Below are positions 1 to 39,700 of a stretch of 64,000 bases of DNA, piece after piece. The notes beneath the pieces are model-generated. The model was not told the origin of the DNA. It worked only from the letters and a program-made list of their open reading frames with translations, and did not search any database. The stretch is from Pelomyxa schiedti (Eukaryota > Protista > Evosea): NCBI GenBank assembly GCA_020536535.1, contig JAHLWZ010000113.1, positions 66,548 through 130,547 on the forward strand, in the 5' to 3' direction. The translations under genes and the position numbers were made by a program. Position 1 is the stretch's first letter. Every line of letters starts with the position of its first letter.

Positions 1-1369
1 GCCCATAAGGAGTGGAGTAGCCACTCTGTGGCTGACTAGTGTATGCTTCCTGAGGAGGCATCGAAGGTGTTTGTGGGTAGGAGTACTGGGGGTAGTTCAT
101 AGGGGGAGGAGATTGGTATGGGGAATTGTATCCCGGAGGATTGAAGGTTTGTTGTTGGTACAGTTGTGACAGTTGTGACTGAGGAGGGCCATAGGGATTG
201 GGTTGCTGAGTTGGGGCAAAATTGGGAGGAGGAACATTGGAGCTATAAGCTGGAGTTGGATTGGGATTATTGTAAACAGGGCCAGTGGGTGTATAATTAG
301 TGGCATAAGGATATCGAGGAGGCTGCGTCGAACCACCAGTGTAATTATTCTGTGGGTAAGTTCCAGGAGGAGCCTGGTGCTGAATAGAAAAGTCCTGCTG
401 CACTCCGGAATATGGGGGATTCCCTCCACTTGGAGGATAAGGGTAAGACTGTGGCATGTTTTGGGAAGGTGGAGCTCCTCCCATGACTGTTGATGATTGT
501 GGGTGTGGTTGCTGTTGTAATTGAGGTTGATTTGGAGCTGCCGGGTAGCTACCAAAGCCGGTCATGGAGGCCTGAGGCCGGTTCTGAGCAGCGGCGTTTG
601 AAGTTGGAGGAATGTTAGAGAATCCTCCACCTGGAATAGGAATTGAACTAGTAGTGTTGGTGGAGTTGGTGTTGATTAAGTTAGAGTAAGTTCCGACTGT
701 GCCGCCAGTGGGATTCGATCCTCCGACCAACTGATGCTGCTGCTGTTGGTCGGAGGAACCAGAACCGGAACCATTAACATTCACATTCACTGTGGATCGC
801 ATTCCGGCTCCCGAAACCGAATTCGCAACCGAACTCGAACTCGTCGTTATCGCACTCGAACTCGAATTCGGATTGGCACTAGATTGTTGTTGTTGATACG
901 CCTGTTGTTGGTAGTTGTTGTTCTGGGCCAGGCTCGATGTAGCATTTGACGTCATAGTATTGGCATTTGCGCTCGTAGCCCCGGTTGTAGTCGATGACGG
1001 CGGATTGGATGAGACGGCTGCGTAGGGGTTCGAACCTCCTACCTGCTGCTGCTGCGACTGTGACACCCCCTGCGGCTGGTGCGTGATCGGCCCCGACTGC
1101 GACACTAGCGAGGCGGAGGAAAAATACGAGGGAGGGGCGGATGGAGGGAGTTGTTGTTGCATCGAGGGGGGCATGGGGAAGCGAGGGAGGGAGGGGACGG
1201 GCATGGGCTGGGGGCGCTGGGCGGGGGCGGCGGACATCGGGAGGGGCATACCGATGGGCATAGGCATGGGGACCGGCATCGGCGGGGGCGGCGGCGGGCG
1301 GAACGACGGGGGCGGCGCCGGCATAGCAGCCGTCGACGTCGGTGGCGCCATGGACGAGGGTGTGTACAT
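1..1369 (-). CDS. Pro/Gln/Tyr/Ser-rich low-complexity protein N-terminus (runs off the window)
   Basis: ATG at 1369 opens an uninterrupted frame (MYTPSSMAPPTSTAAMPAPPPSFRPPPPPP...YPQYSYPQTPSMPPQEAYTSQPQSGYSTPYG) to the window edge. The ORF track misses it because no stop occurs inside the window. The 5' end is GC-rich. Confidence 0.75.
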   Translation of the reverse strand, partial: MYTPSSMAPPTSTAAMPAPPPSFRPPPPPPMPVPMPMPIGMPLPMSAAPAQRPQPMPVPSLPRFPMPPSMQQQLPPSAPPSYFSSASLVSQSGPITHQPQGVSQSQQQQVGGSNPYAAVSSNPPSSTTTGATSANANTMTSNATSSLAQNNNYQQQAYQQQQSSANPNSSSSAITTSSSSVANSVSGAGMRSTVNVNVNGSGSGSSDQQQQHQLVGGSNPTGGTVGTYSNLINTNSTNTTSSIPIPGGGFSNIPPTSNAAAQNRPQASMTGFGSYPAAPNQPQLQQQPHPQSSTVMGGAPPSQNMPQSYPYPPSGGNPPYSGVQQDFSIQHQAPPGTYPQNNYTGGSTQPPRYPYATNYTPTGPVYNNPNPTPAYSSNVPPPNFAPTQQPNPYGPPQSQLSQLYQQQTFNPPGYNSPYQSPPPMNYPQYSYPQTPSMPPQEAYTSQPQSGYSTPYG

Positions 1370-1521
1370 GCCAAGCTGTTGGTTTTGGTTGGGGAACCTA
1401 CTCGGTGTCACCGTAGGCTGCATCACCACCAAGAAATAAAATTTTCTTATTGGTTTGGAAATCAAAAAAAAACATCAAAATTCTCGGTGTTTGTTGTTGT
1501 TGCACTTTGCACGTTTAGTTT

Positions 1522-3645
1522 TTAAGGCAGAAGGCTTTGTATTCTTTTCAGGAATTCTACCATTGTGGCACCGAAGAAGGGAACATCAGAGAGAGCGGCG
1601 TTTGTGAACACCAGGCCGAGAAACTCACTCGTTGTTATGCATTCACCCGTTGTGTTGTTGCTTGCACTTGTGGTTGTTGTTGTGCTTGTGTTCGTGGTTT
1701 GTGCTGCTTCAGAAACAAGCGAAATGTGGGGCACATTTCGCTCATGGATTGGCAACAGAATTGAACACACTGTCTCATTATTGGAATACAGATCAATAGC
1801 TTCCTGCACACTCTGGTGGGTTGCCACTGGAACCAGGAATGATGCACACCGATCAACAGGTAGGAAAATGAGGGCGCCGCACACGAGCATAGCCTTCCCT
1901 GCACTGGGTCTTATGTGAGGATCCCTCTCCAAGAGGTACCCCACCAGGGGGCTCAGGATGTGGTGTCTGTGATTTGGGGGAACTTGATGTTGCCCAAGGC
2001 TTAGGTTGAGAATGAGGTTAGTGTCGAGGTTGTTGTTGTGGTCGAACGGGTGCATGCCTGTGATGAGCTCATATACAACACAACCAGCTGCCCACACATC
2101 ATTCTTTTCCAAGCACAGTGTGGATGGTGACTGTGGAGGTTGTATGACTTCTGGGGAGCGGTTTTTTGGGCAACCGTCAAGGGATTGTGATTGGCCTTGT
2201 GGAATGCAGCCCAATGAATCACACTCTCTCACAGTGCCAAAGTCACACAGCACCCAGAGGTTACCATGGATCCTTGACCTAGAAACTGCCAGTATGTTGC
2301 TCAGCTTGATGTCACCATGGTAGCAGTTGTTGCCATTGAGGTGTGTGCAGGCACACATTAGACAAAATGTAAGCTCAATTGCCTGTTGTGACAGCGAAAA
2401 TCTGGAGATCTGGCCTGTCAGAAACATCTCGGCATTGCCCAAACCGAGCTCCTGCACGATATATGTAGTGCGGGAGAAAACAGGTGTTGGATTGGGGTCC
2501 TTGCATCCTTCCACAAAGTTGCCGCTGTCATCCACAATGCAATAGTTTTGCCGAATATCTGCTGGTATTAGATCTAAGAGCGATTTTGAGTGGAAGAAGC
2601 TGTAAATGTTGCACAGGCTCCAGTGTGGGAAGTTTTTGACGAATATGTACTCTGCGGAAAACCACTTATTAAGGCTCTCAGTACTGTTGCCTGCCGAGTA
2701 GTTGTACATCATTTTGAGTGCCACTTGGCTGTTAAAATGGTCCTGAACTGGAACCTTGTTCACACACCCATTACTCCCCTTTCCAAGGCACACTGCTCTG
2801 CTGATATCAAGGTCATTCATCCCAATTGTTCCAAGGTTTCCCTTGTCAAATCGGGAGAATGCATGAGAATGAAGAACAGGTTCTGGTTGGGCTGGGTTCT
2901 CTGTTGCCCAGTGGTCACTCCTTTCGTTGTAGTTTTTGCTTTCCTCTTTTGCTTCCATGTCACTTGCTCTGAGAAACCTTTCTAGGTTGTTGTCTTGGCG
3001 CAGCTTAGGAAATGCCCCAGCTAAGGAATCAAGGGAGCCCCTGGCTATAGAAATGGAACCGTGGGGAATTGCAACAGCAGGAGCGTGCTGAATAAAATTC
3101 CTGAAGTCTGCAGAACCGGCAAAAGCACGGTGGTCACAATTGGGTGAATCCCACGATTGAAAAAAAGGAAAGTAGTAAAAATAGGATGTGGGTGGGAGGC
3201 CTTCTTGCAGATTATTTTGGATCGCACTTTTGTTATCTCTGCTGGCACTCATCACTGCTGCTGAAGCTTTGTTTATCACAATGCTGTAATTGGATCCAAT
3301 GGCAGGAACAGCCTGGTGCAAAAGAGACATCATGGCGACGTCACCAGGCTGCACACGCACCGACATCAGATTTACAACAAAAACTACTCGGAAAATTCCT
3401 CCTTGGTTGAGTGCCTCCAGTACCGCCTGCTGTTGCTGCCTCTCAACACCAAGAGCTGGAGTGTCAATGTACATTTTGCCATCCACATCAGTATACCGCT
3501 CACACGTTGTCCATCCAGTGCTGATCCAACTACCGAGGCGGAAAGGCGATCCCAGCGGGCCTTGAACAACGGCGCTCAGCAAAGCGCTCTTGCCCACTCC
3601 CAAAGGACCCATGAAGATCGTGGTAATGGCAGGGGGATCCGACAT
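1522..3645 (-). CDS. AIG1/MMR_HSR1-like P-loop GTPase fused to a PINK1-like Ser/Thr kinase (intronless)
   Basis: GTPase motifs: G1 GPLGVGKS, G3 DTPA, G4 NKAS. Kinase motifs: LGKGSNGCV, VALKMMYNYSAG, HGDIKLSNIL, DFG, SPE, DVWAAG, RPSA. Likely ATG at 3645 (MSDPP). Confidence 0.85.
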   Translation of the reverse strand: MSDPPAITTIFMGPLGVGKSALLSAVVQGPLGSPFRLGSWISTGWTTCERYTDVDGKMYIDTPALGVERQQQQAVLEALNQGGIFRVVFVVNLMSVRVQPGDVAMMSLLHQAVPAIGSNYSIVINKASAAVMSASRDNKSAIQNNLQEGLPPTSYFYYFPFFQSWDSPNCDHRAFAGSADFRNFIQHAPAVAIPHGSISIARGSLDSLAGAFPKLRQDNNLERFLRASDMEAKEESKNYNERSDHWATENPAQPEPVLHSHAFSRFDKGNLGTIGMNDLDISRAVCLGKGSNGCVNKVPVQDHFNSQVALKMMYNYSAGNSTESLNKWFSAEYIFVKNFPHWSLCNIYSFFHSKSLLDLIPADIRQNYCIVDDSGNFVEGCKDPNPTPVFSRTTYIVQELGLGNAEMFLTGQISRFSLSQQAIELTFCLMCACTHLNGNNCYHGDIKLSNILAVSRSRIHGNLWVLCDFGTVRECDSLGCIPQGQSQSLDGCPKNRSPEVIQPPQSPSTLCLEKNDVWAAGCVVYELITGMHPFDHNNNLDTNLILNLSLGQHQVPPNHRHHILSPLVGYLLERDPHIRPSAGKAMLVCGALIFLPVDRCASFLVPVATHQSVQEAIDLYSNNETVCSILLPIHERNVPHISLVSEAAQTTNTSTTTTTSASNNTTGECITTSEFLGLVFTNAALSDVPFFGATMVEFLKRIQSLLP

Positions 3646-4220
3646 ATTCGGTGATGAAAGGGAATTTCGGCCCTTGTGCAAACGGGTTGATTTTCACGCA
3701 CTGCGTTAGACAGGATTGTATTCCACCTCACCTGACACAACAAGGGAAAGGACCGGCACGTCACTGCCCACAGTCCAGCTGTCCTGGCGTCTTGGATGCA
3801 CAATAAGGGAAAAAAAACACTGTCCTTCTGCTAACAGCTGGAGTCAGTTCGGGTCCTGCACTGATGCTGGGAGGCACTATTCCTACATATCTTCGTGGGT
3901 CTCATGGTAGTTGGTAAGGGTCAGGTCCTCTCTGTTGGTTACCCTCTCTGACCTGTGGATCAAATCGGCTATAGTTCTATCAGTCGCCGTGACATCACCA
4001 CACACTGTTTAGAACTATCCTAAAGGATTAGAAGTTATAGAAACTCGAGAACGATCTTTGTTCGCTTTACCGACTTCTCTTTTGACATCTATAACGGTTT
4101 GTCTTACAGTATGCTACTGTCTAATCGTATGGCTATGGTCCAATCTTCTTTATACGGAGCCTCGTTGGAATTTGACTCGAAAGAAAAACAAGAAGTGAGG
4201 GGGTCCGGAAAAAAATCGTT

Positions 4221-4499
4221 TCACAGGCAAAGGGACATCATGGAATCGTAAGGCTGTACACGCGATGACCTCAGCGTGACAGCAAATACTACTTGGAAAA
4301 TTCCTCCTTGGTGGAGTTGTGGTCTATCAGCACCAAAAGCGGGTGTGTCATGGAATGCCGCGTTGCTGCCCACATCAGTATACTGCTCACACGTTGTCAA
4401 TCCAGGGAATCCGGTCCCGCTCGGGAAAGGTGCAGGCGACCCGGAGGGAGTCGCAAAATTGTGTACAGCAAAGCACTCTTGCCAGCTTGTGAATGACAA
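4221..4499 (-). pseudogene. Decayed fragment of the same GTPase family
   Basis: FPSGTGFPGLTTCEQYTDV...DTPAFG...QGGIFQVVFAVTLRSSRVQPYD aligns with the paralogues on either side, but it has no P-loop and is truncated. Confidence 0.7.
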
Positions 4500-4573
4500 T
4501 AAAAATCGTTTTAAGGAAGGAACCGCTTGGACTCGACATCGTCGATACTATCACATGCAAAAGGATTAAATTT

Positions 4574-5848
4574 TTACGATTTTTTTCCCCGAAATGGGGA
4601 AGAAAAAAGAGCCTGGTCCTGACCATAGACATACATGACATCTCCTGGGTGAACTGTTCTTTCCTGTCTGGGAGTGGTACCTTGCCAGCTGTATGTCAGC
4701 ATCTCAGGCCCATTGCGTGCCCATTCATGGGTTCCTCCCTTTGGAATGTTAAAGCAGCTGTCTTCCCCTGTGGAATCACTGGTTTTTGTGAGGTGGCAGG
4801 ATACCATATTGGCTCCGCGATTCACGACAATTACATGGTGTGACTTATTCAATTCATGTGCGGTCCTTCGGGTTATGTTTTAAAAGACCGCAACTGATGT
4901 GGTGACTGCACACCTAAGGGTTTCCGTTCTTTGGTTGCTGTTTTTGGTCTCTTCCTCAAATTCTTGTTTCACCTCATCGGCTCTTCGGCTGTGAAGAATG
5001 AGACTAATATTTAATGAAAATGAAGCATGCCTGTGTTTACTGTCCCCCGTGGCGCAGAACAGTGCCAGTTGCAAGTCATATTCTTTTTTTAGAGCTGCGG
5101 CTCTTTCTCTTTGTATTTTTGCCACCAGTTCCTGAAGCAACTGTTCCATAATTGACTGATTCATCCGCTCAGTCCATAACGTACTTTCAAGTGCATCAAC
5201 AAGTGACTCTCGCCCATCTGGGAGGAAGGAAGAAATGGAACCGTGGGGAATTGCAACAGCAGGAGCGTGCTGAATAAAATTCCTGAAGTCTGCAGAACCG
5301 GCAAAAGCACGGTGGTCACAATTGGGTGAATCCCACGATTGAACAAAAGGAAAGTAGTAAAAATAAGATGTGGGTGGGAGGCCTTCTTGCAGCTTATTTT
5401 GGATCGCACTTTTGTTATCTCTGCTGGCACTCATCACTGCTGGTGAAGCTTTGTTTATCACAATGCTGTAATTGGATCCAATGGCAGGAACAGCCTGGTG
5501 CAAAAGAGACATCATGGCGATGTCACCAGGCTGCACACGCGCCGACATCAGCGTGACAACAAAAACTACTCGGAAAATTCCTCCTTGGTTGAGTGCCTCC
5601 AGTACCGCCTGCTGTTGCTGCCTCTCAACACCAAGAGCAGGCGCGTCAATGTACATGTTGCCATCCACATCAGTATACCGCTCACACGTTGTTGTCAATT
5701 CGGTGCCGGTCGATTTACCAGGGCGGAAGGGAGTACCCGTAGGGACTGGGAAAATTGTGGCCAGCAAAGCACTCGTTCCCACCCCCGAGGGTCCCATGAA
5801 GATCGTGGTAATGGGAGGGTCCGAGCCAAGCAGCGGGGGGTCCGACAT
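4574..5848 (-). CDS. GTPase paralogue (degenerate P-loop) + coiled coil + small C-terminal beta-rich domain; 3 exons
   Basis: ATG at 5848, with GPSGVGTS and DAPA motifs. Predicted GT-AG introns at ~4989-5060 and ~4866-4913 join ...QLALRRADEVKQEFEEETKNSNQRTETLR to TAHELNKSHHVIVVNRGANMVSCHLTKTSDSTGEDSCFNIPKGGTHEWARNGPE... (ORF 4574-4852). Confidence 0.75.
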
Positions 5849-5962
5849 CAACGCCCCTGTGTCTTCCACTCAATTTTTTTTTTTTTTGCTCCATCACATA
5901 CACCAAGTGAACGAAACTCGTCAAAAAAAAGTTGGTTTTCCGTCTCTGAAGGAGGGGATGTT

Positions 5963-6769
5963 CTAAGGGATGGATGTAGGGTGCACAGCAGTTGTCGACG
6001 GTGCGCAAGTGGTTGTGACGTTGCTGGAGCTCCTTGCTTCTACTACTTCTTCTTGCAATTCAAGCATCTGGTCTACAGCAGTGTTGGCTGTGGGTCCAAC
6101 TATTTCCCAGACCACAGGCACTGGATCCACAATCAAGGAACTTGGAGGGAGATCCACAACCGGAGCTCGCTTGGTGAACTCTTTGAAGTCGCTGGGAAGC
6201 AAATTGAACGCATCTACATTATCCACATCCTCCCAGGCCTCAATGAATGGTAAGAAATAAACACTTGATGTTGGAGGTAAACTCTGTGGCAGCTGTGCTA
6301 TTAATGACTCCTTTCCTCCTGGGGTGTTGTCAAATAGGCCATGAGGGGTCCTGTTAACGATGATAGAGTAATTCCCTTTGATCATTGGAACAGCCTTGAG
6401 CACAGAGCTAAGTATAGCTTTGTCTTCCATTCGGATGTGGCCTGCTTCAAGAACTACAACAAAGATCAGCTTGGATATTCCTGAAATCATATGACTGATT
6501 ATGTCATCCATGTTTGGCTCATAGAATCCCGGTGTATCAACAAACCAGAACCCTTCATTATCCAACTTTTGCTGGCAGGTAGTAGTCAGACCAGTGCCAA
6601 ACGAAAGGCCCGAGGGAAACGGTAAAGGACAACCAGGTCCCCGTGAGAAAATTGAATTCAGCAAAGTGCTCTTACCAACACCAGGGCTCCCCATCATAAT
6701 GGTGGTGTGCCACTGTGTACCGTTGCATTGGGGTCTGTTGTTCACAATCTGTGTTTTGTTTGTTATCAC
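5963..6769 (-). CDS. AIG1/MMR_HSR1-like GTPase paralogue with canonical motifs
   Basis: GSPGVGKST (G1), FPSGLSFGTGLTT (G2 region), DTPG (G3), NRTP (G4 position). The start is uncertain and may be spliced from upstream. Confidence 0.8.
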   Translation of the reverse strand: MITNKTQIVNNRPQCNGTQWHTTIMMGSPGVGKSTLLNSIFSRGPGCPLPFPSGLSFGTGLTTTCQQKLDNEGFWFVDTPGFYEPNMDDIISHMISGISKLIFVVVLEAGHIRMEDKAILSSVLKAVPMIKGNYSIIVNRTPHGLFDNTPGGKESLIAQLPQSLPPTSSVYFLPFIEAWEDVDNVDAFNLLPSDFKEFTKRAPVVDLPPSSLIVDPVPVVWEIVGPTANTAVDQMLELQEEVVEARSSSNVTTTCAPSTTAVHPTSIP

Positions 6770-7478
6770 AAGTTATCCAAAGTGATAGATAGTTCAGGGA
6801 ATGAACCTCTGATTCCAGCCTAAAAAGGCCTCTGTCGGGGTGTGACATGATCTGGGACTTGTAAGGTGCAATGACAGGTTTAAATGGGTCATCCATGGGT
6901 GTCCCCCAATTCAAGGCGTCTGCAAGACTCTCCGAGAAGCCCCATGGGTCGAAGAAGGGCAGATTATGTGCCTTCAGCATAGAAGCAGCTGGAGCATTCC
7001 CAGGGAGGAGACTGGAAATCGGGGAAGAAATGTAGTCATGCAGCTGTAGCACCTTAACTCGTGTCCTATGCTCCACAGAGTCACGGAGTGAGGCTAGATC
7101 AGAGAAAAAAAAGGACTTTCCTGAGCCAGATCTTCCAATCTTGTGGTGGGAGTAAATGGATGAGCTATCATATTTGTCACCAAAGGAACATACAGGAATG
7201 TCGAAATCTGGCTGGGCTAGATTTGGCGACCTCATTCTTTCTGCTCCAAACCACGCTCTAATTGCAACCTCTTTTGATGATGTACCATGTGTGGACTTGA
7301 AAACAGTCCAATTTCTTAATGGAGGCAAAAGACAAGCTGGCATCCATATTGTTAAGTTCAAATAAAAGAACTTGGAAGAGTGATGCACACATTCTGTTTG
7401 GTTGTCGAGTTTCTGTTGTACTTCATGTCGTTCTTGTTCACCTCGATTCATCCACCCGGTCGGTGAAGCAACATGCAC
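6672..7478 (-). CDS. Divergent P-loop NTPase-like segment, possibly degenerate
   Basis: GRSGSGKS Walker A and DPWG at a G3-like position, preceded by a short charged helical segment. Exon structure is unresolved. Confidence 0.4.
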   Translation of the reverse strand: MHVASPTGWMNRGEQERHEVQQKLDNQTECVHHSSKFFYLNLTIWMPACLLPPLRNWTVFKSTHGTSSKEVAIRAWFGAERMRSPNLAQPDFDIPVCSFGDKYDSSSIYSHHKIGRSGSGKSFFFSDLASLRDSVEHRTRVKVLQLHDYISSPISSLLPGNAPAASMLKAHNLPFFDPWGFSESLADALNWGTPMDDPFKPVIAPYKSQIMSHPDRGLFRLESEVHSLNYLSLWITCDNKQNTDCEQQTPMQRYTVAHHHYDGEPWCW

Positions 7479-7499: not shown

Positions 7500-8246
7500 T
7501 TAAGAAGTTCGCAAATTATGCCTTCTCCTCTGGAAGGTTATTTTCCTTCTGCTCTGTAAGCTTAGCTTGGTTCTTTCCCAGTGTAGGAACCACTTTTTCC
7601 ACACAATAATTATTTGCCGCAAGTGCTTCTTCAACCTTTTTCTCAGAAACTTCGGGAGGATACCTGCCAGTATGTAAGCAGAAGTAATGGGTATGAAATA
7701 GACGAACGACGCCACTGCCGTCAAGAAAGCTGACGGTTGCAGCAATTTCTGAGTCGATTGACTCAATCGGTTGGCCGTGGTCGAGCCACCATCAAACGAT
7801 TTCGCATCACGTGCGAAATCACCCCACCCATGGAACATATCGTCCTTCCACTCCCCAACGTAGCTCCCTCCATCCCTGTACAGCATTCTCCCATTCCCAT
7901 TCTTCTTGCCGTGGTCGAACATGCGACGGTAGATGTCGCTCCAGCCATCAGGTGACCTCCATGTGCCACGCCCATGCCACTTGTCCCCGTCCAACTCACC
8001 CTCATACACTGCCACACGTTCCCCGCCCATTTGCCTCCTTTGGACGCCCCACCCATCCTGTGGTGTTTGATTCCACTCGCCATCCTTGACTTCACCCTTC
8101 TTGTAGTACCACGTTGGCTTCGTCAAACTGCCCAGTCCACTCCACCGACCCTCGTACCACATGTTGACACCTGGACCGTGCTTATTTGCGTCACCCCACT
8201 CGCCGTCGTAGGTGTCGCTTTGAAACTTGCAGCCAACAACCTTCAT
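7500..8246 (-). CDS. MORN repeat protein (degenerate, or 5' part of a spliced gene)
   Basis: Repeats YDGEWGDANKHGPG, YEGELDGDKWHGRG and YVGEWKDDMFHGWG. Confidence 0.7.
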   Translation of the reverse strand: MKVVGCKFQSDTYDGEWGDANKHGPGVNMWYEGRWSGLGSLTKPTWYYKKGEVKDGEWNQTPQDGWGVQRRQMGGERVAVYEGELDGDKWHGRGTWRSPDGWSDIYRRMFDHGKKNGNGRMLYRDGGSYVGEWKDDMFHGWGDFARDAKSFDGGSTTANRLSQSTQKLLQPSAFLTAVASFVYFIPITSAYILAGILPKFLRKRLKKHLRQIIIVWKKWFLHWERTKLSLQSRRKITFQRRRHNLRTS

Positions 8247-8447
8247 CGTGGGTTTTGACAATGCACTAGCTGGCTCGTAATGTTGTGATTATGCGAAGGT
8301 GAACAAAAAAATCCGATTCTGAGTACCTAAATATAGTTGCAGACAACTCGAAAAACCCAACTTAGACACCAAGTTTAATGTTGGCAGCTGTGGCAAGGGT
8401 TCAATGCACACTCCCCCATCTGTTATTCATTGAGAAAGGGGAAAACA

Positions 8448-28179: not shown

Positions 28180-29701
28180 TTAGTAAGTTCTTTCTACAAG
28201 GTAGTCTGCCAAGGCAGTTAAAAATTGAATACCTTCTGTACTGAGGCTGATTGTTTCCAGGGAAGCTTTTGCCTCCAACACAAGCTGATGAATGCGCTCT
28301 TTGACAACTGGTAGGCCATGTTTATTTATAATCCTTGCCGCTTCATGTACGCGAGCTTCCCATGCCTCGTTTGCAACTCCCTTAGAAGGGTGTTAGGGCG
28401 AGTGATTGAAAGCTATGAAGGTCCTACCTGGTTATTGCACGAGGCACTGCACAGTACTTCTTTCAGTATTGCAACCTCATCAGGTGGTGCCCGGGCAAGG
28501 GCAGTTGTAACGAGCATGGTTGCTTTTCCTTGTCTGATGTCGGAAGCAAATTCTCTCCCTTTTTGACTGTTATCGCTGATGTCGAGCACATCGTCCTGCA
28601 ACTGAAAGGCGATGGCTGCGGCATGGGCGTATTTGGTGAGACCAGCGAGTTGCTCCGGAGTTGCACCGGCAATAAGGGCGCCCGTGCACACAGAAAGTTC
28701 GAATAGCTTAGCTGTTTTGTAGGCCATCATGTACTCATATGTAGCAGTCCACTTGGTCAAATCCCGGACTGAATTGCTTTCTGTAGTTGTAGATACTTGT
28801 TCAGTCGGTAGCTGGCATCCAACCATGTCGAGCACTTGGCCAAGGTTTACCACTGTATAGGCATCCAGAAACCTCCTTTCCAGTTCATTCTGCAAGGATA
28901 GGGTCGCGCGTGTCACATCTTCCGTTACGCCAAATGTTACCGGACAGCAAGGTGTGGTACAACTTGGTGGGAGCGCCGAAGTGGACGATAAACGCAGAGC
29001 CTCAGATGTTAAAATGTTGCCAGCCAGTATACCATGTGAAACTGCAAACAAGTCCTGGGAGTTGTGGAATAAAATGCCTCGGTGCTGTTGTTGGTGTGGG
29101 TGCTGCTGTTCCCAGTCGCGAAGAATCTTAGTGAAACACTTTGAGTTAGAAATGATACTTTGGCAAGAGAGTAACGGGAGGAAAAAGACAAGTAAAAAAA
29201 CCTTCCAGACAGTTGGGTTTCCCCTCCTGAGGCTATCTTCATCCATTATGTCATCATGGACAAGAGTTGATGTGTGCAGCAGTTCAGCAGCCAGCATTAT
29301 ATTTGCAAGTGAGCGGTTGGCAACATCCTCCTCCAAAGGTGGTGCCGGTTTGTCAATGTACTTCACAGCCCGATAAGCCATCAAACAAGCTTCATGTTAA
29401 CGTTTTTAAAATAAAACTGCGTGTTCCAAAAGGCAAAAACTGCCACCACAACACCCCATGGTGAAGTAAAGGTAAAAAACAAAAAAACAAAAAAAACCAA
29501 ACAAAACATACCGGCGGGCCTCAGTCTCTTTCCACCGCAGAGTACGAAACCCTCCAGAGTTTGGTACAAGTAGCTCACAAATGCGTCGTCGGCACACATG
29601 CCGCTGACGATCCCTGGTCTGAGAATGTTGTGGAAGTGCCCCACAATGACGGGCTGAAAGAGCCCCGCTATTTGGGATAGAGTGCGCACAACGTCACACA
29701 T
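28180..29701 (-). CDS. Polyprenyl diphosphate synthase (GGPPS/IdsA type)
   Basis: GGKRLRP, first Asp-rich motif ELLHTSTLVHDDIMDEDSLRRG, YKTAKLF, second motif FQLQDDVLD, and SDIRQGKAT. Confidence 0.92.
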
Positions 29702-36735: not shown

Positions 36736-39700
36736 TTAATGTCCACCGGCGGCAGTTGTGGCCGAGGCAGCTGCGGCTGCGTTGGCAGCTTCCTTTGCGG
36801 CTTCGATGGCAGCTTCGAGTGTTGGTGGCATGGGGGCACCGAAGAGGCCGGTGAAGGAGGCGCCACCACAGCACGGGATGACGCAGGGGTATACTGTAGG
36901 TGCTGTGGGTTCGTTGGGGAGACCAGTGAGAACGGTAATTTCTTCGCCGTTCTGGGAGAATGTTAGGAGAAAAGAAGTGGTCAAAAGAGTGGTCGGTCAA
37001 CCTTGTAGAAAGTGACTGTTCCTTTGCTTGGTGTTCTGTCAACGAACACTCCAAGGCGATCTCCTTCCACGAAGCAGGCATTTGCCAATTGAGAAACTGC
37101 AACACCATTGGAAAGGAATCTGCCTATTCGCTCCCACTTCCAGCAGCCAGTCTTGTCTGCGTAGCTGTTCAGCCCAATTGGAGCTCCTTCAACAATTACG
37201 GCAATGCCGCTGGCACTGCAGCTAGCGACGTCAATCATCACTTCCCAGTAGCGCTGCACTCCAGGAGCAATTCCATAAAGCGAGATAGTACACTGAGTTT
37301 TCTTTCCTGGATTTGTGACTGTGGCTGCGTTGTTGGAGAACTCCAAGTCAAGGCCCTCCAGTGGCCTCCAGGTATCCTTGTGGTAGAGAGTAACATCTAG
37401 AAAGAGGTAAATACAAACTTCAACCGGACAGGTACACACCAATGACAGGGGGTGGTGGAGGGGGTGCAAGTTCGGGAATTTCACGGCAAGTATCGTCAGA
37501 GGGTACCGCACAGAAGTCCACGGTGAAGGAGTCGTTTGTGCAGCAAGGTGTGATTGATGGGAAAAGGTTGTCCGATGTGGCGGGTAGCCCAGTCAGAGTC
37601 TTCAAAGCGCGACCGTTTTTGTAGAAGGTAATGGTGTGTTTGTTGGGGCGTCGATCAACGAGGATGCACATCAAGTCACCAGTCCGGAATCTCTCATTTC
37701 CATCAATGGTGGTACCGTTCTGGAAGAACTTTCCAGTGGCTTCCATCTTCCAACAGTTGGAAGTGTTGGCGTGGTTATTGGCCATGTCTCCTACTTTGTT
37801 CTCGTGTACGACGCCAAATCCACAAGAGTCGCAGCTTGAGTTGTGGATCGTAATCGACCAGAATCGGGCTGTTCCATTAGGAATGGGCATCTTGGAGCAC
37901 GTGGACTGAGTAGTATTGGTAGTGTTGGTGACAGTAAGATCGCCGTTAGAGAAGACGGCATTATTGCCTGACAGATGGCGCCAGCAATCGTCAGCCCATT
38001 TGCTTGTAAGGCACCTTCGGGGCTTGACAACTGTAAAAAGTATTGAGCTCATCTTTAAAGAGAAACGTTTGCGTACTTGTAGAAGCAGCCTTGGCTGCGG
38101 CCTCTTTCTCGGCGGCCTCCTGAGCGGCTACTACAGCGGGATCAATGAATGTTGCGGTTTCGAGGTTCAAAGCTCCTGGCAATTCAATGGCAGTGGGCTG
38201 TTTGGTGGAGAAATCAGCAGTGAAAATATTTCCGCGGCAGCAAGCACCAACAAACGGGATGAGAACCTCCCCTTCAGCACTCTGTAGTCAAGTCAAAAAG
38301 GAGAAAGGAGAAGCAACAAAAACCATACAATAGTGAATTTCCTCTGGTTAGTTTCGTCGTTATTCTTGGTGATTGTAAAGAGTGTGGGTTCCTTTCTTCT
38401 ATCACAGAAACAGGTCAGCACATCACCTGCACCGAATCTCTGACCAGTGTCGTTGCAGCTGCCGTTAATGTAGGCAGAACCACCTGAAGAATGCGGTTAA
38501 CTAAGCTTTTTACAAGAATTGACCAAACCTGCTTGCCACTTCCAGGATCCAGTTCCGTCTCCGTGGTTACCTCTTCCGATGGAAGCGCTTGGTTTGGCAA
38601 CCCCCACACCAGCGTGGCTGCAATCAACGGCTCCAACCTTAACCTTCCATGTGAAGCAACAGCCTGGGGGGATGCCGTACTCCGCGAAGGTACTTTGAGT
38701 GTTGTTCGTAGTGTTCGTCACAGTCAAATTATTGTCGGAAAATACGATATCAAGGTTAGTAAGCTGCTTCCAGAAATTCTTTGGCCACTGCTCGATCGCT
38801 TTCCCAATGCCACCGACAGCTTTAGAACCACTAGCGCTCATATTGCGTTTCACTCCAATCATGTTGGCATGAGACACGTCTAAGCCGGTGATGGTGGTGT
38901 TGCTTAGGTCAGCTCCCATCAAGTTGCAGCCCCTCAGTATGCACTTGGTGAGATCAGCTCCGCGGAAGGTGGCGCCAACCATGATTGCCCCTGCAGCGTT
39001 GGCCGTTGTTAAATTGGCCCCCTTAAGCTTGGCTTGAATCAAATTGGCTCCAGTCAAATTTGCACCAGTGAAATCAGCCATGGAAAGATCACACATCTCG
39101 AGATTGCATCCAGACAAATTGGCGCCAGCGAAATTCCATCCGCGCATTACTTTTCGTGAAAGATCCTGGCCAGAGAGGTCTTTCCCCTTGTTGTTATAAG
39201 GGAGGGATGCGCCTCCAGTTGTAATGGTATCCATAATTGGCCCCAATAAATCCTTGAGTGCAAGGAATCGGCAGGTTTTTTCGTGATCAGGGAGGGATGG
39301 TTTGGGACCTGTCAAACTGTCAACTCGAGAAAAAAAGCCAAGAAAACAAGGTACCTATCCAAGGGCACAAAACCGAAGCAGCAGAACATTTGACAGGTGC
39401 CATTTTGCACCCAGAGCGTTCATGCTCTGCCATGTCCTTGGGGGCAATCTTCTCACCACATGGGCAATCTATGGGACGTCACCTCGTGAGAGTAACGCTA
39501 GGATACTAACCAATAGGACAAATTGGTACGTGCTCGCCGCTAAATTTCCCGCGTTTCACCTTTGTAGCGCACCTGGGGCAAGGAATAATGGTCTCCGGAC
39601 AAACTTCATCGTGTCTGGCGAAATCTTTTGGGGCAACACGCTGACCACAACCGTTCACACAATCTACCAAATGTCACAGAAGGGAAATAATTGCGGGAGA

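Follow-up and report, generated by a model that had tools for sequence, protein, structure and literature searches.

The stretch of DNA analysed here (the window) comprises 64,000 nucleotides from Pelomyxa schiedti, an anaerobic, oxygen-avoiding amoeba. On the reverse strand at positions 1522..3645, a single open reading frame of 707 codons starts with an ATG at 3645 and encodes a 707-aa protein in which a GTPase domain and a protein kinase domain are joined in one frame, as the earlier note had proposed. An intron-free reading suffices, and the junction is present in contigs of three DNA sequencing runs. The protein consists of an AIG1/GIMAP/Toc34-like G domain (aa 1-199; 3049..3645, family alignment and fold model), a 64-aa linker (2857..3048), a non-RD Ser/Thr kinase domain of a PINK1-sister type with all catalytic motifs intact (aa 264-586; 1888..2856), and a helical C-terminal extension that superposes on that of PINK1 (aa 587-707; 1525..1887), all on the reverse strand. 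Every kinase motif cited earlier is found in frame within 1522-3645: the Gly loop (2784-2767), the beta3 motif (2721-2680), RTTY (2475-2461), HGDIK (2319-2296), KNDVW (2106-2083), and RPSA (1911-1900). In the G domain, the P-loop G1 GPLGVGKS lies at 3609-3586, an altered switch I at 3537-3505, G3 DTPA at 3465-3454, the Arg of the conserved box at 3360-3340, and G4 INKA at 3276-3265. The Pfam Pkinase model matches aa 286-586 (E 3e-24), and a Pfam GTPase match to aa 10-126 is faint (E 0.094 for the single sequence). As described previously, there is no presequence or transmembrane segment in this HGD-type kinase protein, and the G domain occupies the N-terminus instead. The end of the C-terminal extension resembles that of the nearest kinase paralogues. 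No annotated protein matching the fusion gene was detected, and the exact protein was absent from the collection searched.

No homologue of the linker was detected in the 52.4-Mb P. schiedti assembly (5,337 contigs) or in the retrieved loci. In a random sequence of the same composition, a 192-nt stretch would be stop-free in the given frame with a chance of 3.8%, an argument that is weakened by an internal ATG (2958, Met230). A 39-nt in-frame GT-AG intron at 3059-3021 is a possibility on sequence only.

The tandem neighbour on the same strand, Pelo_1352 (4880..5848), encodes a donor-type G domain that has lost the P-loop Lys and is followed by a helical tail; an RNA contig covers 5044-5291 of this gene. 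Positions 3049-3634 of the fusion gene and 5231-5819 of the neighbour are 92% identical in DNA sequence, and the identity stops exactly at the domain end, 3049. Also on the reverse strand are a decayed fragment of another G-domain copy (4229..4483) and a more canonical G-domain exon of the same family with GKST and DTPG motifs (5963..6748). An RNA-supported 58-nt intron (6749-6806) joins the latter exon to the upstream exon 6807-7478, which contains its own P-loop-like motif (GRSGSGKS) and has no Pfam match. The tandem G-domain pair at 4572-6742 has a duplicate on contig C1255 (L042:4164-6302, 82% identity), with an older third pair nearby. An interspersed repeat (3731..4214) begins 86 nt upstream of the fusion ATG and carries a second repeat nested at approximately 3956-4108; the nested repeat has a higher copy number, other copies of the 3731-4214 repeat lack it, and an Rfam search of the 3731-4214 region gave no match. 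A MORN-repeat frame (7500-8261) is located upstream of the GTPase array on the same strand. Downstream, the gene at 1-1370, which begins about 150 nt past the fusion stop codon, encodes a Pro/Gln-rich region followed by RS repeats and an RRM-like stretch, and looks like an ordinary RNA-binding protein. Inspection by eye also found a polyprenyl-synthase-like frame (28413-29384) and a pentapeptide-repeat frame (38497-39315).

The fused G domain belongs to a clear family of about 11 P. schiedti genes, with relatives in a dictyostelid, a chytrid, Mortierella and metagenomes; only one of the 11 or so genes is in frame with a PINK1-sister kinase. Its predicted structure (pLDDT 88) has a P-loop GTPase fold. 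The top Foldseek and VIA rows are Toc34/GIMAP, but Era, EngB, SynDLP, and SMG9 score less than 1 Z away (Z 13.6 for Toc34/GIMAP against 12.7-13.4 for Era, EngB and dynamin-like proteins), so that the classes are not separated by fold score. Atlas neighbours of the domain are annotated as AIG1/MMR_HSR1. The Pfam AIG1 model does not match the fused copy, and it gives the neighbour 21.5 bits, below the cut-off of 27. The family consensus motifs are GNPGVGKST, GLT, DTPG, GR-x-R-P-x-D, and NK. In the fused copy, the P-loop is intact with its Lys (GPLGVGKS). In switch I the Thr is kept, the family-conserved Ser, Gly, and Leu are changed, one residue is deleted, and several of the changes are private to this copy. 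G3 is DTPA, which is common to its subclade, while Gly is present in 18/18 rows outside the subclade; loss of the G3 glycine impairs switch-II movement in GTPases generally. G4 is NKAS, and the Asp of [NT]KxD is missing family-wide. The conserved box after the fourth strand reads VRVQPGD instead of GR-x-R-P-x-D, with the Arg kept, which may correspond to the GIMAP arginine finger. The G-domain dN/dS is 0.38-0.56. Likeness to AIG1/GIMAP and Toc34 (paraseptin) proteins lies in the top fold matches, the conserved-box-like Arg, the tandem array and the helical tails of the unfused copies; differences are the score under the Pfam AIG1 cut-off, the altered switch I, and the lack of the G3 Gly, the G4 Asp and a membrane anchor. 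The N-terminal domain is a GTPase fold with no relation to Roc-COR, as had been suggested, but the proposed gating of the kinase by the GTPase is doubtful because G3 is DTPA and switch I is altered.

For the kinase, sequence, profile, and fold agree that PINK1 is the nearest characterised relative, which bears out the relationship first noticed from the motifs. The closest solved match of the single kinase sequence is PINK1 (E 3e-14), and the kinase-family profile scores 108 bits against PINK1 and 71 bits against the next family. In the predicted kinase model (pLDDT 84), the first 24 Foldseek rows are all PINK1; in structural superposition PINK1 reaches Z 29-33 (other folds, 27 or lower), and model residues 1-451 align with PINK1 129-574 through a C-terminal extension packed on the C-lobe, in agreement with the PINK1-like extension that had been proposed. 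Next in fold after PINK1 are the PEAK1/Pragmin pseudokinases (Z 26.9), in which the kinase domain is also flanked by helices; those proteins are catalytically dead, whereas the fusion kinase retains all catalytic motifs (Gly loop, beta3 Lys, alphaC Glu, catalytic Asp-x-Lys-x-x-Asn, DFG, xPE, and alphaF Asp). The catalytic loop is HGD instead of HRD, and the entire kinase family is non-RD.

In the maximum-likelihood tree, a non-RD protist clade that includes the fusion kinase (support 100/99) is sister to animal PINK1 (99/98), and the two clades together are set apart from other kinases (100/99). Within the protist clade the fusion kinase groups with the Pelomyxa copies (100/97) and has their invariant residues; a larger quick tree agrees and places it outside the animal PINK1 clade. 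In the strict sense this is the outcome that the earlier note had named as a refutation, clustering outside the PINK1 clade, and a PINK1 orthologue was rejected as an identification since the kinase falls in the sister clade and PINK1-specific features are missing. Features in common with animal PINK1 (TcPINK1, PhPINK1, human) are the aromatic KMxxNY beta3-alphaC loop, also given as MxNY and correctly recognised at the outset, a pre-beta5 insert ending in Arg, and the helical C-terminal extension. Missing from the fusion protein are the presequence, the transmembrane segment, the full N-terminal helix, the Ser228 site and insertion 2; it also differs from animal PINK1 in being non-RD and a member of a multi-copy family with variable N-termini. 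In the column of PINK1 Ser228/202/205 before alphaC, the fusion kinase has Asn, with Ser and Thr at +1 and +2; this column is Ser in 15/16 animal PINK1s and in 1/19 family rows. Insertion 2, between alphaC and beta4, is absent. The insertion before beta5 is in the right position and is about 45 aa long, but its sequence is not that of PINK1 insertion 3: the P-x-x-L-P-x-R...G-R-N motif is replaced, and only the last Arg is common. Phosphorylation of the Ser228 site is essential for ubiquitin phosphorylation by PINK1 (PMC8828467), and insertion 3 binds substrate and is needed for ubiquitin binding (PMC8616241). The fusion protein has neither the Ser228 switch nor insertion 2 nor the insertion-3 motif, so that its sequence gives no support for a ubiquitin-kinase activity, and the claim of a ubiquitin/UBL kinase is unsupported. 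Compared with its nearest paralogues, the kinase has a dS of about 1 and a dN/dS of 0.23-0.25 and thus has long been under selection; this purifying selection may predate the fusion.

The kinase is one of at least 29 full-length single-exon copies of the PINK1-sister kinase in P. schiedti, which are accompanied by intron-containing relatives. The N-termini of the family vary and include ankyrin, actin, Sel1, MSP, RING-B-box-NHL, LRR and ARM domains and a second kinase; in the two nearest paralogues (64-67% identity) this part consists of ankyrin repeats plus a coiled coil. Relatives occur in metagenomes, in Paratrimastix and, more distantly, in Gefionella, which shows that the family extends beyond Pelomyxa. 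The Paratrimastix pyriformis protein KAJ4457529.1 (P0042) is an ankyrin-kinase, and the Gefionella okellyi relative is P0073. Up to 6 kb of sequence upstream of each of 20 kinase paralogues contained no G domain, the G-domain family of the fusion was absent from the 150 best kinase relatives, and among 150 scored of 1009 candidates no Ras-family match lay on the same strand beside a listed kinase. A full-length architecture search (targets of 0.55-1.75x query length) returned nothing beyond one kinase paralogue and the neighbouring GTPase. The fusion is thus far a single copy, and no orthologue was found elsewhere. A Pelomyxa tandem kinase, KAH3759533.1 (P0078), has a second domain with a more PINK1-like activation loop; it joins PINK1 on a long branch in the maximum-likelihood tree and is placed beside the protist clade in the quick tree. 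It is a better PINK1 orthologue candidate than the fusion gene. A Parkin RING0-like exon (PF17976, above cut-off) is located at L038:1183-1965 on contig C291.

The fusion gene is best read, from the sequence comparisons, as a domain swap that is specific to this lineage and seen once. The AIG1/Toc34-like G domain next door would have been duplicated, and the copy joined at its exact domain end to a single-exon kinase cassette. Three other copies of the same G-domain subtype continue into a helical tail; since sibling G domains keep these tails and the nearest kinases keep ankyrins and a coiled coil, the fusion is derived for both of its parts. Compared with the neighbour, dS is 0.66 in the 5' third of the G domain and 0.05 in the remaining two thirds, at the 3' side, a mosaic that fits gene conversion. 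The old 5' third disfavours a very recent birth, and the age of the fusion is uncertain. About 48 kb before the window on the same contig (L024:1138-2520), the same G-domain subtype stands in frame behind ankyrin-like repeats, so that this domain, too, is a mobile module. At L029:962-3060, an AIG1-like G domain comes after a URGCP-like GTPase frame and is interrupted, just past its P-loop, by a frameshift or a small intron.

The genome of P. schiedti was assembled from seven separately amplified cells (PMC8887013), and the near-identical repeat shared with the neighbour is about 300 nt long, so an artefact of whole-genome amplification or of assembly across this repeat had to be considered. 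Contigs of four runs (DNA runs X1, X2, and X3 and one RNA run) were examined over 1300-6900. In all three DNA runs, contigs extend from the kinase to 3078 with zero mismatches, 30 letters into the repeat. The threshold for bridging was 31 letters, and the contigs stop at the branch point of the repeat; the contig graph branches at the equivalent position in the tail of the neighbour gene, 5260. Read depth approximately doubles within the shared repeat, and depth at the junction equals that of the flanks. Both junctions are therefore present in the reads, as the equivalent branching and the doubled depth indicate. The two G-domain copies also differ at 47/591 positions, and an assembly chimera is largely rejected. 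Should each of these runs come from a different one of the separately amplified cells, a chimera formed during amplification would be very unlikely. Since no contig of the three DNA runs covers the fusion gene from end to end, it is the published assembly that links the Lys-bearing P-loop to the kinase; all told, an artefact is highly improbable. The single RNA run covers less than 1/10 of the stretch and gave no contig on the fusion gene, an absence that is weak evidence because of this low coverage. The same run gave contigs on both neighbour genes, one of them spliced at 6749-6806; the end of one neighbour RNA contig is presumably a template-switch adapter.

We propose, with moderate confidence, that a nucleotide-bound G domain replaces the sensor and coiled coil of the kinase relatives as a dimerising or docking unit, acting more as a scaffold than as a switch. 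The N-terminal modules of the family would dock or cluster the kinase in the manner of the mitochondrial anchor of PINK1, and the fused G domain is predicted to bind nucleotide through its intact P-loop. Pairing through the G-interface, with the conserved-box Arg kept, could bring two kinases close to each other or place them on an internal membrane. Toc34, GIMAPs, and septins form head-to-head G-domain dimers (PMC5084822, PMC10996617); PINK1 is activated by dimerisation, and its dimers are aided by the TOM complex (PMC8828467). Because of the Gly to Ala change in G3 and the altered switch I, the fused G domain is more likely to be a slow or static scaffold than a cycling switch. The kinase is probably active without priming phosphorylation, as it is non-RD and has no Ser228 site. 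The partner domains (AIG1-like, ankyrin, LRR, Sel1, and RING) and the birth-and-death pattern suggest that its most plausible role would be in cell-autonomous defence or the control of symbionts.

The main rival to this scaffold model, possible though less probable, is an incidental fusion with no joint function, in which either the kinase is produced by itself, for instance from Met230 or by splicing to an acceptor close to 3021, or the entire gene is young and silent. It would account for the lack of an RNA contig on the gene, although the low coverage of the RNA run reduces the weight of this point, and translation from the ATG at 2958 would yield a 478-aa product resembling the kinase-only family member P0016. 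The low dS to the neighbour over the 3' portion of the G domain, the presence in the same array of one copy without the P-loop Lys and of one decayed fragment, and the repeat that adjoins the gene start also agree with a chance event; the old 5' third, which suggests gene conversion rather than very recent birth, the in-frame break exactly at the domain end, and retention of the P-loop Lys that the neighbour has lost do not. Next in order is a GTP-gated ubiquitin/UBL Ser65 kinase, in which a PINK1-type kinase would be turned on by GTP loading, in the way that Roc acts on LRRK2. PINK1 as the top match in sequence and fold, the MxNY loop and the Arg before beta5, the Parkin-RING0-like exon in the genome, and the fusion of some family members to RING domains all speak for such an enzyme, but the Asn in the Ser228 column, the missing insertion 2, the replaced insertion-3 motif, the DTPA of G3, and the closer relationship of KAH3759533.1 to PINK1 make it unlikely. 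An amplification or assembly artefact comes last, by far the least probable of the three: it draws on the amplified single-cell source and on contigs that pass the junction by only 30 letters, and is opposed by the identical junction in three runs and by the branching and depth of the repeat. The most far-reaching reading is improbable as well: the fusion gene would be expressed, its immunity-type G domain would stand in for the TOM anchor of a PINK1-lineage kinase, and GTP-dependent dimerisation would drive Ser228-independent phosphorylation of ubiquitin or a UBL in an amoeba that has no aerobic mitochondria. The gene would then be one of several independent GTPase captures by the kinase family.

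Fusions of AIG1 and protein kinase domains have been reported in Biomphalaria glabrata, salmon, and fungi (PMC7053062). Like the Pelomyxa gene, they combine both domains in one chain within a tandemly expanded, domain-shuffled family; in contrast, their kinase is described as N-terminal and not reported to be PINK1-like, and their origin is presumably separate. The assertion that the architecture was undescribed therefore holds for the exact pair, as no description of an AIG1-like GTPase with a PINK1-like kinase, nor of the kinase family, was found in the literature searched, but not for AIG1-kinase fusions in general. Roco proteins (LRRK2, Dictyostelium Roco) also have a GTPase followed by a kinase in one chain, which is an analogy only: the Pelomyxa protein has no Pfam match to Roc or COR and was rejected as a Roco protein, its linker is only 64 aa, and its kinase is not TKL. 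The top Atlas look-alikes of the whole protein are DSTYK-like proteins with a dynamin-class N-terminal domain, one cluster of which is Dynamin_N plus kinase; both the GTPase and the kinase families differ, and the likeness is at the level of features, with no alignment. PINK1 is treated as a metazoan kinase in the literature searched, with 48 metazoan orthologues (10.64898/2026.09.05.749644), and is never named in the Pelomyxa genome paper (PMC8887013).

The joined gene is real in DNA and is a one-off product of domain swapping. Its single copy, worn switch, and lack of an RNA contig in one run make it a poor foundation for any claim of a new signalling system. Being compact, intronless, and easy to express, the fusion gene could be used to test G-domain control of a PINK1-type kinase. 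Most of the interest lies in the kinase family and not in the fusion gene: where PINK1 has its mitochondrial anchor, its protist sister family has many different docking modules, which suggests an ancestral enzyme that was activated by clustering and was adapted to mitochondria later.
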